Positions 52,302 to 53,201 of a stretch of 64,000 nucleotides of DNA are shown here, in pieces. Source of the stretch: Perna viridis. Its lineage: Eukaryota. The DNA lies in assembly GCA_037379345.1 (NCBI GenBank), contig CM074520.1:16657488-16721487 (forward strand), written 5' to 3'. The stretch's first letter is position 1; each line of letters starts with the position of its first letter. The notes beneath the pieces are model-generated. The model was not told the DNA's origin, made no database searches, and saw nothing but the letters and a program-made list of their open reading frames with translations. A program made the position numbers and the translations under genes.

Positions 52302-52638
52302 TATAATACATCCGATTGACATGTATTAAATTACTTCAACTTAATACAAGTATCAAAACCTTGCAAGGTATGTAGATGTGTTTTAATCAGAACTTAAGAA
52401 TTTGGATTCCATTGTTAAAATCAAGTTGTATTTTCCCTTGATATTACTGGAAGTAATTTTTTCGTTATGTTTGATTTTCAAAAAATAATTTGTTAAAGAA
52501 GTTTAATACTGGTACTAAAGTTTTACGAGCAACAAGGGCGATTTGTTGTATCTACTTTCAGAGTTTCTGTGAGTGTTGTTTTTCTGATTGATAAATCATA
52601 AAAAAAAAACATGTAAATTTTTTATTTCAGTCAGCAAG
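52302..52638 (+). promoter_or_regulatory. Putative TATA, non-coding exon 1 and intron 1 of the peptide gene
   Basis: tataata at 52302, donor AAG|GTATGT at 52367/52368, and a strong acceptor tttttttatttcag ending at 52630, followed by tcagcaagATG. Confidence 0.5.
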
Positions 52639-52687
52639 ATGAAAACAAGCGTTCTAATTGTTGCCGCCTTGATCATTTTAAGTTGTA
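52639..52687 (+). CDS. Coding exon 1 of a myticin-like antimicrobial peptide precursor (signal peptide MKTSVLIVAALIILSC, phase-1 intron)
   Basis: AAG-ATG context, a basic-then-hydrophobic signal peptide, and consensus donor A|GTGAGT at 52687/52688. Confidence 0.8.
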
Positions 52688-53016
52688 GTGAGTACAAATT
52701 TGCGAGTACATGTAATAGTATAATATTCTAATTTATGAAACATTGCGCCGTTAAACATTAAAATGCAGTTTTTATAGTTTTGGTAACTACAATTAGTTAA
52801 GGCATAAAGCTTCAGTTCAAAAAAAAAACATCAGGCGTTATATTGATCGATGATTTTCATATGAAAGGTGATTAAATTTGTGTAAGATATAATGTTTGTA
52901 TCTCAGCATATCATTGAGGTTCTTAACCAGCTAAAGACGATCATGCATGTGAGTAAATATAATTGTAAAATTCACAAATAAATTATTGTAAATAGAATAT
53001 TTGTTTTATTTCAAAG

Positions 53017-53201
53017 TTGAATTGTGCTACGCATTTAGATACTGTTTTCTGTGTGGTCCTCATTGTCGATCTCGGGGTTGCAGAGGTTATCATTGTATGC
53101 CTTATCCATACAGACCAATGTGTGCGTGTAGAGGGTGCAACCGGAATTTCCAGACTACTACAAATTCAAACTGGCTGACGACTGAACTAGGAATGACGTA
53201 G
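53017..53201 (+). CDS. Coding exon 2 of a myticin-like (8-Cys CS-alpha-beta defensin-type) peptide precursor
   Basis: Acceptor ttgttttatttcaaag. The splice keeps frame and gives (I)ELCYA-FRYCFLCGPHCRSRGCRGYHCMPYPYRPMCACRGC-NRNFQTTTNSNWLTTELGMT*. Cys spacing is C-x2-C-x3-C-x4-C-x4-C-x8-C-x-C-x2-C. Confidence 0.8.

Follow-up and report, generated by a model that had tools for sequence, protein, structure and literature searches.

Does the region at 52302-53201 of a stretch of Perna viridis DNA hide a spliced gene for an antimicrobial peptide (AMP), and, if it does, to which of the mussel AMP families does that gene belong? The stretch, referred to here as the window, comprises 64,000 nucleotides (nt) of contig CM074520.1 (GenBank assembly GCA_037379345.1, positions 16,657,488 to 16,721,487, forward strand); it contains no N letters, and its GC content is about 33%. 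A reader using the raw sequence alone had predicted a small peptide gene with two coding exons at this place, correctly to the base, and had labelled its product a divergent myticin-like peptide of a new short-loop subfamily. The gene is real, and it is transcribed. In our reading, which we consider likely, it is a four-exon gene that encodes a secreted precursor of 77 amino acids (aa) and represents a divergent, dispersed paralogue of the mytilin-like host-defence family of Perna.

A transcribed gene for an eight-cysteine precursor

The coding sequence of the gene starts with an ATG at 52639 on the + strand, from which sixteen codons and one further base lead to 52687, where the donor GTGAGT follows. 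The acceptor AG lies at 53015-16, and the frame that opens at 53017 reads I-ELCYA-FRYCFLCGPHCRSRGCRGYHCMPYPYRPMCACRGC-NRNFQTTTNSNWLTTELGMT and ends with the TAG at 53199-53201. Reading the joined exons returned the layout that had been proposed, a signal, a cationic eight-cysteine core, and a tail, of 22, 35, and 20 residues, respectively. A recount of the core, FRYCFLCGPHCRSRGCRGYHCMPYPYRPMCACRGC, confirmed the composition given for it, with eight Cys, six Arg, and no Asp or Glu; its charge is +5.9 and its isoelectric point is 9.1. The cysteines are arranged as C-x2-C-x3-C-x4-C-x4-C-x8-C-x-C-x2-C, three residues stand ahead of the first of them, and the hairpin loop is rich in Pro and Tyr (MPYPYRPM). 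No other cysteine-rich open reading frame (ORF) of this kind was found elsewhere in the window.

Four sequencing runs (X10, X13, X14, and X21, the last consisting of raw stranded RNA sequencing data) were aligned to 52100-53600 of the window. Runs from the same organism contain 19-31% of the sampled words of the 1.1 kb between 52300 and 53400, which is the share expected from exons alone; run X13 gave no reads that aligned to 52100-53600. Six X21 reads, with five different starts, skip exactly from 52687 to 53017 (GT..AG, phase 1), and a contig of X14, which comes from a second study, carries the identical joint. All 34 aligned X21 reads are oriented as + strand RNA. Both the hidden spliced gene and the phase-1 intron within its signal peptide, as the original prediction had them, are therefore supported by RNA reads and complementary DNA contigs.

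The joints 52367/52631, 52687/53017, and 53240/55585 define a structure of four exons and three introns, in which an exon for the 5' untranslated region (5'UTR), a signal exon, and a mature-peptide exon are followed by a last, non-coding exon. This is the order reported for mussel AMP genes of the cysteine-stabilised alpha-beta (CS-alpha-beta) type, in which a C-terminal exon comes after those for the 5'UTR, the signal, and the mature peptide (PMC7356231; PMC7168163).

Exon 1 is non-coding and is placed at 52330..52367 (+); its 3' end is supported, while its start at 52330 is a guess. The joint between exons 1 and 2 comes from one contig only, of run X10, whose loose end AACCTTGCA (nine letters) stands ahead of 52629; these letters and the AG behind them match AACCTTGCAAG, whose only site in the window, 52357-52367, has GTATGT directly after it. 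Intron 1 (52368..52630, +, GT..AG), which this contig delimits, lies within the 5'UTR, and an unspliced contig covering 52356-52511 is also present in X10. A possible TATA box, TATAATA at 52302..52308 (+), was read from the letters only, about 60 nt upstream of the end of exon 1; the X21 depth is 0 over 52304-52354, and no read marks the start of transcription. Exon 2 (52631..52687, +) consists of 8 nt of 5'UTR followed by the ATG, the sixteen codons, and the extra base (MKTSVLIVAALIILSC), with contigs that start at 52629 or 52631, and it is followed by intron 2 (52688..53016, +, phase 1, GTGAGT..AG, 329 nt).

Exon 3 (53017..53240, +) holds the end of the signal to 53033, the core at 53034-53138, the tail at 53139-53198, the stop codon, and 39 nt of 3'UTR. 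Its donor at 53240 (GTGTAT) is joined to 55585 in five X21 reads and in the X14 contig, so that intron 3 (53241..55584, +), with its acceptor tttcag at 55584, lies wholly in the 3'UTR. This intron is partly retained, or some transcripts continue past the 53240 donor, as the depth is 3-5 over 53250-53476 and an X10 contig runs unbroken past the donor to 53517. Over 53477-53600, several fixed mismatches separate the reads from the window, and in one contig 53484 is followed directly by unrelated sequence; a repeat that is expressed elsewhere is the probable source of the depth in this stretch of intron 3. Exon 4 (55585..55859, +) is non-coding, with a minimum length of about 255-275 nt: the loose-end sequence agrees letter for letter with 55585-55614, and the X14 contig extends 275 nt beyond the joint of exons 3 and 4.

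An alternative acceptor at 53039 (+), 22 nt downstream of the main one, appears in an X10 contig that joins 52687 to 53039 (GT..AG). The acceptor, used by this one contig of run X10, could mark an individual-specific splice variant.

Relationship to the mytilin-like peptides of Perna

To which family does this peptide belong? A genome-wide search with the Pfam Myticin-prepro model picks out a cluster at 3.63-3.69 Mb of contig C6 in the same genome. We map it to C6:3630000-3691000 (loci L005-L010 and L025-L032), where tblastn and six-frame reading revealed at least eight mature-peptide exons distributed over both strands. A profile dominated by the cluster genes matches Mytilin-B (2EEM) with E=1.1e-5. 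The Perna mytilins known from transcriptomes, a mytilin-like family described in 2020 (PMC7168163), appear to have their genomic home in this cluster. The 2024 genome paper of Perna viridis makes no mention of antimicrobial peptides, mytilins, or defensins (PMC11358141), and a genomic map of the main Perna mytilin-like cluster is added here.

The cysteine array of our locus was searched as an exact eight-codon DNA pattern over the 723-Mb genome, which gave 40 matches. Those judged non-repetitive are the locus itself and five exons of the C6 cluster; nearly all others are TG-rich simple repeats, and one further match, at C11:24059614, looks like TGT-rich low complexity, judged by its appearance only. 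The complete array, with its x2 first interval, is thus identical in five of the eight cluster genes (the fifth cysteine stands at the canonical position in two of the eight). Since these five genes share the array, the short first loop is the normal state of a known family and not a new signature, and the proposal of a new short-loop subfamily is not supported in the form given.

The build of the genes points in the same direction. In all eight cluster genes, as at the locus, a phase-1 acceptor lies 5-6 residues ahead of the predicted signal cleavage site. A signal exon could be found for five of the eight, and in each case it consists of an ATG, 16-17 codons, 1 nt, and GT, as in our gene; two of these five signal exons start with MKTAVLL, compared with MKTSVLI at the locus, a shared MKT.VL start. 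A Tyr between the fourth and fifth core cysteines is invariant across the locus and the cluster. The best non-self match of the locus in the whole genome is the cluster gene L006, at E=0.11 (E=2.5e-8 for tblastn within the 80-kb cluster), with 14 of 32 core residues identical; core identity to the cluster as a whole is 28-44%, mostly cysteines.

The comparison with the published Perna mytilin-like peptides (P. viridis mytilins 1-7 and P. canaliculus mytilins 1-8; PMC7168163) gives a similar picture. They have the same "alternative" eight-cysteine array, with the fifth cysteine in the first strand, their mature peptides measure 33-37 aa, a range that includes the 35 aa of our core, and the CS-alpha-beta fold is predicted for them as it is for the locus. 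Between the sixth and seventh cysteines, CCC is present in 13 of 15 Perna mytilin sequences, where it is typical but not defining (Greco et al. 2020, PMC7168163), and in seven of the eight cluster genes; L006 has CGC instead, and our locus has CAC. Seven genes with CCC and two with a canonical fifth cysteine agree with what Greco et al. 2020 report of Perna mytilins. Perna mytilins carry one residue ahead of the first cysteine, whereas the locus carries three, and the Pro/Tyr-rich hairpin loop is a feature of the locus that they do not share.

Structure prediction agrees with this placement. AlphaFold2 (AF2), when given an alignment of nine paralogous sequences, predicts a helix and two strands with a core of predicted local distance difference test (pLDDT) 78-85 and leaves the tail disordered. 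Given only the 35 residues of the core and no alignment, it predicts the same topology (pLDDT 81; helix 2-13, strands 18-22 and 29-33). With the core model, Foldseek ranks the synthetic mytilin 2EEM first, with a probability of 0.92, template modelling (TM) scores of 0.69/0.70, a root-mean-square deviation (rmsd) of 1.6 A, and 39% identity; with the longer model, no match exceeds 2EEM in target-normalised TM score (0.74). VIA-align against 2EEM gives Z 3.8 and an rmsd of 1.3 A over all 34 residues, and the identity to 2EEM across both models is 35-39%. Nearly all other structural matches are CS-alpha-beta defensins, ASABF-type peptides, and scorpion toxins. The structural E-values fall short of significance, which the small size of the domain leads one to expect, and the case for the fold is made by the consistency of the matches and not by these values. 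The CS-alpha-beta fold that had been anticipated for the core is, as a prediction, upheld by both models, each of them closest to 2EEM. In practical terms, the peptide would offer a further natural CS-alpha-beta scaffold whose Pro/Tyr-rich loop is unusual.

The likeness to mytilin B of Mytilus (2EEM) extends to sequence, with 34 residues compared with 35, an H-C-R-x-R-x-C helix motif, and a Tyr after the fourth cysteine. Mytilin B differs in its canonical array, C-x3-C-x3-C-x4-C-x11-C-x-C-x-C-x2-C, in which the fifth cysteine lies in the second strand, and in its 103-aa precursor with a long anionic extension that is partly encoded in exon 4.

The label of the original prediction rested on the myticin array, which has an x4 first interval and whose last six intervals are those of the locus. 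Mytilus myticins A, B, and C (Pfam PF10690) also resemble our gene in having four exons and eight cysteines, and their family model matches the locus weakly (E=0.001). Mature myticins, however, measure 40 aa, within precursors of 96-100 aa whose C-terminal region, about 40 aa long, lies in exon 4 (PMC3210125, PMC7356231), while the mature mytilin peptide measures 34 aa (PMC3210125). The locus has a 35-aa core, a 20-aa tail, a 77-aa precursor, and a non-coding exon 4. Furthermore, its exon 3 obtains 19.6 bits with the Myticin-prepro model (19.8 in the genome search), below the PF10690 gathering cut-off of 28.5 bits, whereas the exon 3 pieces of two C6 paralogues pass that cut-off with 30.2 and 33.6 bits. 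Because the locus stays under the cut-off while these exons pass it, it has no special myticin affinity, and on this score and on the length of its core the myticin-like label does not stand.

Taken together, the array, the gene build, the signal exon, and the co-occurrence in one genome make membership in the mytilin-like lineage probable, and membership in the CS-alpha-beta group of mussel AMPs is far more secure. The borders between mytilins, myticins, and defensins are blurred according to authors working on the group (PMC7168163). The most fitting place for the locus is within the mytilin-like group, as a divergent and dispersed member; none of the others in this genome is more divergent, and what it adds to the Perna mytilin-like repertoire is a dispersed, highly divergent component, not a new peptide class. 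It is unlikely to be one of the seven deposited P. viridis mytilins, because 77 aa lies outside their published range of 83-90 aa, and it is probably an undescribed member of a known family.

The lost extension and the competing explanations

If the gene belongs to this family, why is its precursor so short? In all eight cluster genes, a phase-2 donor (GTAAGT, GTGAGT, or GTAAAT) overlaps what looks like the stop of exon 3, and exons 2 and 3 alone encode about 76-80 residues. Since these stops overlap donors and the published precursors of 83-90 aa require additional residues, the coding sequence of the cluster genes must continue into exon 4. At the locus, the TAG is a true stop that lies 39 nt ahead of the RNA-verified donor, which is in phase 0, and a second in-frame stop follows. 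Because this TAG ends the coding sequence inside exon 3, the exon-4-encoded end of the pro-region has been lost, leaving the last intron in the 3'UTR and a tail of 20 residues with a net charge of about 0. The locus is an example of the loss of a C-terminal pro-region.

When the regions downstream of the paralogues were compared by blastn to locate their exon 4, nothing but repeats turned up. The window at 55813-56219, starting in the tail of exon 4, carries a dispersed repeat that is also present at 4674-5005 (79-88% identity); the part compared with the C6 cluster, 55814-55900, occurs there in several places, with up to 94% identity.

Next to the live gene lies an inverted, degenerate, partial copy of it, at 50320..51052 on the - strand (blastn, 81-86% identity). 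Three segments match: 52839-53033 against 51052-50862 (86%), 53411-53487 against 50813-50738 (86%), and 55335-55684 against 50656-50320 (81%). What remains in the relic is the end of intron 2, 17 nt from the start of exon 3 (I-E-L-S-Y-A), and, past a deletion that took away the part for the mature peptide, a fragment of intron 3 together with the exon 4 region; exons 1 and 2 are absent. Its position beside the gene points to local birth-and-death duplication, a pattern that has been reported for mussel AMP families (PMC7356231), and a dead inverted copy beside a live gene illustrates this mode of evolution. Between the relic and the gene, an ORF at 51500-51808 (-) with a DUF6451 match of 61 bits is probably a fragment of a retroelement.

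As a member of the family, the peptide may work as follows. The 22-aa signal would be removed after CYA, and the 35-aa core would fold into a helix pinned to a beta-hairpin by the pairs C1-C5, C2-C6, C3-C7, and C4-C8 of its cysteines. With a charge of +6 and its hairpin loop, the core could act on microbial envelopes in the manner of mytilins and defensins; this activity and the processing that precedes it are our proposal.

Several results weigh against the assignment to the mytilin-like family as a working gene. The tail is neutral and shortened compared with the usual anionic pro-region, and the precursor, at 77 aa, is shorter than the 83-90 aa of Perna mytilin precursors, whose extensions have charges of 0 to -7 (PMC7168163). 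The score with the Pfam model is below its cut-off. Outside the cysteines there is little similarity: with a profile built from the eight paralogues, the locus peptide scores 17.2 bits, and shuffles with the cysteines fixed average 9.0 bits (standard deviation 5.7) and reach 17.2 bits in 144 of 2000 cases (7%). For comparison, the published mytilin hidden Markov model gives E<1e-10 for members of the family (PMC7168163). A blastn comparison of each exon and intron of the locus with the C6 cluster found only repeats. Expression is low in the one raw run, in which the 34 reads stand among 10.4 million records. Finally, the acceptor at 53039 shifts the frame and leads to a product without the cysteine array, which ends at 53178 (ORF 53017..53178).

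The main competing explanation, to which we give a modest chance, is that the gene is a decaying paralogue, which is still transcribed and spliced but is heading towards a pseudogene and yields little or no functional peptide. It would account for a premature stop relative to a family in which eight of eight paralogues read into the phase-2 donor, for the frameshifting acceptor in the contig of one study, and for the low read depth; the neighbouring copy is already dead, and mussel AMP families often include pseudogenes and truncated variants (PMC7356231). However, the signal peptide, all eight cysteines, the cationic core, and the splice sites are intact, and the position of the stop roughly coincides with the end of the tail that exon 3 encodes in the paralogues. 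A stop codon less than 50 nt from the last exon junction escapes nonsense-mediated decay, and at this short distance such decay is not expected here. The sole coding variants observed also argue against degeneration: 52668 C>T is synonymous, and the C>T polymorphism at 53061 (+), present in contigs of X10 and X14, replaces the His before the third core cysteine with Tyr, the residue that several C6 paralogues have at the equivalent position. Furthermore, an expressed mussel CS-alpha-beta gene without a C-terminal extension has a precedent in MGDt of Mytilus (PMC3210125, Table 1), although MGDt belongs to the defensin family and our locus still keeps 20 tail residues.

A slender chance remains for a separate lineage, that is, for a myticin-lineage gene outside Mytilus or for a new CS-alpha-beta subfamily distinct from the Perna mytilins. 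The locus is a singleton on C10, whereas the cluster lies on C6, another chromosome, and apart from repeats it shows no nucleotide similarity to that cluster; its similarity to the cluster outside the cysteines is not significant, it lacks CCC, and both its Pro/Tyr-rich loop and its tail are different. When its sequence is used alone, the best sequence matches in the PDB are the oyster defensin Cg-Def (2B68) and the nematode ASABF (2D56), which have the same fold and align without gaps from C2 to C8 of the cysteines, at E-values of only 0.9-3.7; both differ in having a long N-terminal loop ahead of the helix, and they come from other taxa and gene contexts. Cysteine spacing is unable to separate mollusc defensins from myticins, and the array alone cannot separate myticins, defensins, and alternative-array mytilins (PMC5116183). 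Against this, the Perna mytilin-like exons outscore the locus with the Pfam myticin profile, and no sequence in the genome is nearer to the locus than the cluster gene L006; its x2 loop, the size of its signal exon, its MKT.VL start, its core length of 35 aa, and its helix motif HCRxRxC are all mytilin-like. There is a small chance that the locus founds an unnamed mussel CS-alpha-beta lineage of its own, as the first myticin-lineage gene outside Mytilus or as an intermediate between mytilins and defensins, which has dispensed with the anionic pro-region; if true, its peptide would be stored and activated differently from the classical mussel AMPs.

It is very improbable that the gene encodes a secreted CS-alpha-beta peptide with a non-antimicrobial role, such as cytokine-like signalling or ion-channel modulation, since its family context and its cationic core, free of acidic residues, are those of a typical mussel AMP and nothing speaks positively for another role, even though scorpion channel toxins have the same fold, a language-model search of the ESM Atlas returned only scorpion-toxin clusters (Toxin_3 and Toxin_5, 0.76-0.83, to be taken as leads only), myticin C has chemokine-like activity (cited in PMC7168163), and the low expression is unlike that of the very abundant haemocyte AMPs.

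Database matches and other features of the window and the genome

A word-indexed protein search with exon 3 returned no match, and a control with L006 was also blank, so that this result says nothing about novelty. Two phmmer matches among 1.84 billion representative sequences were rejected as spurious, as both are repeat proteins without the cysteine pattern.

Elsewhere in the genome, two adjacent matches to the arthropod-type Defensin_2 model lie at C12:16753391-16755264 (L016 and L017), with 51 and 31 bits, of which the first is a six-cysteine defensin. Within the window, an uninterrupted ORF of 638 aa at 20199-22115 (-) spans a complete DUF229 domain (sulfatase-like, 423 bits), and another DUF229 ORF, a partial one, is located 40 kb away on the opposite strand, at 60790-61653 (+). 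An ORF of 225 aa at 2582-3259 (+) carries a FLYWCH zinc-finger domain (41.9 bits). At 57045-57220, an A/C-rich minisatellite is followed by a perfect (CA)29 microsatellite.

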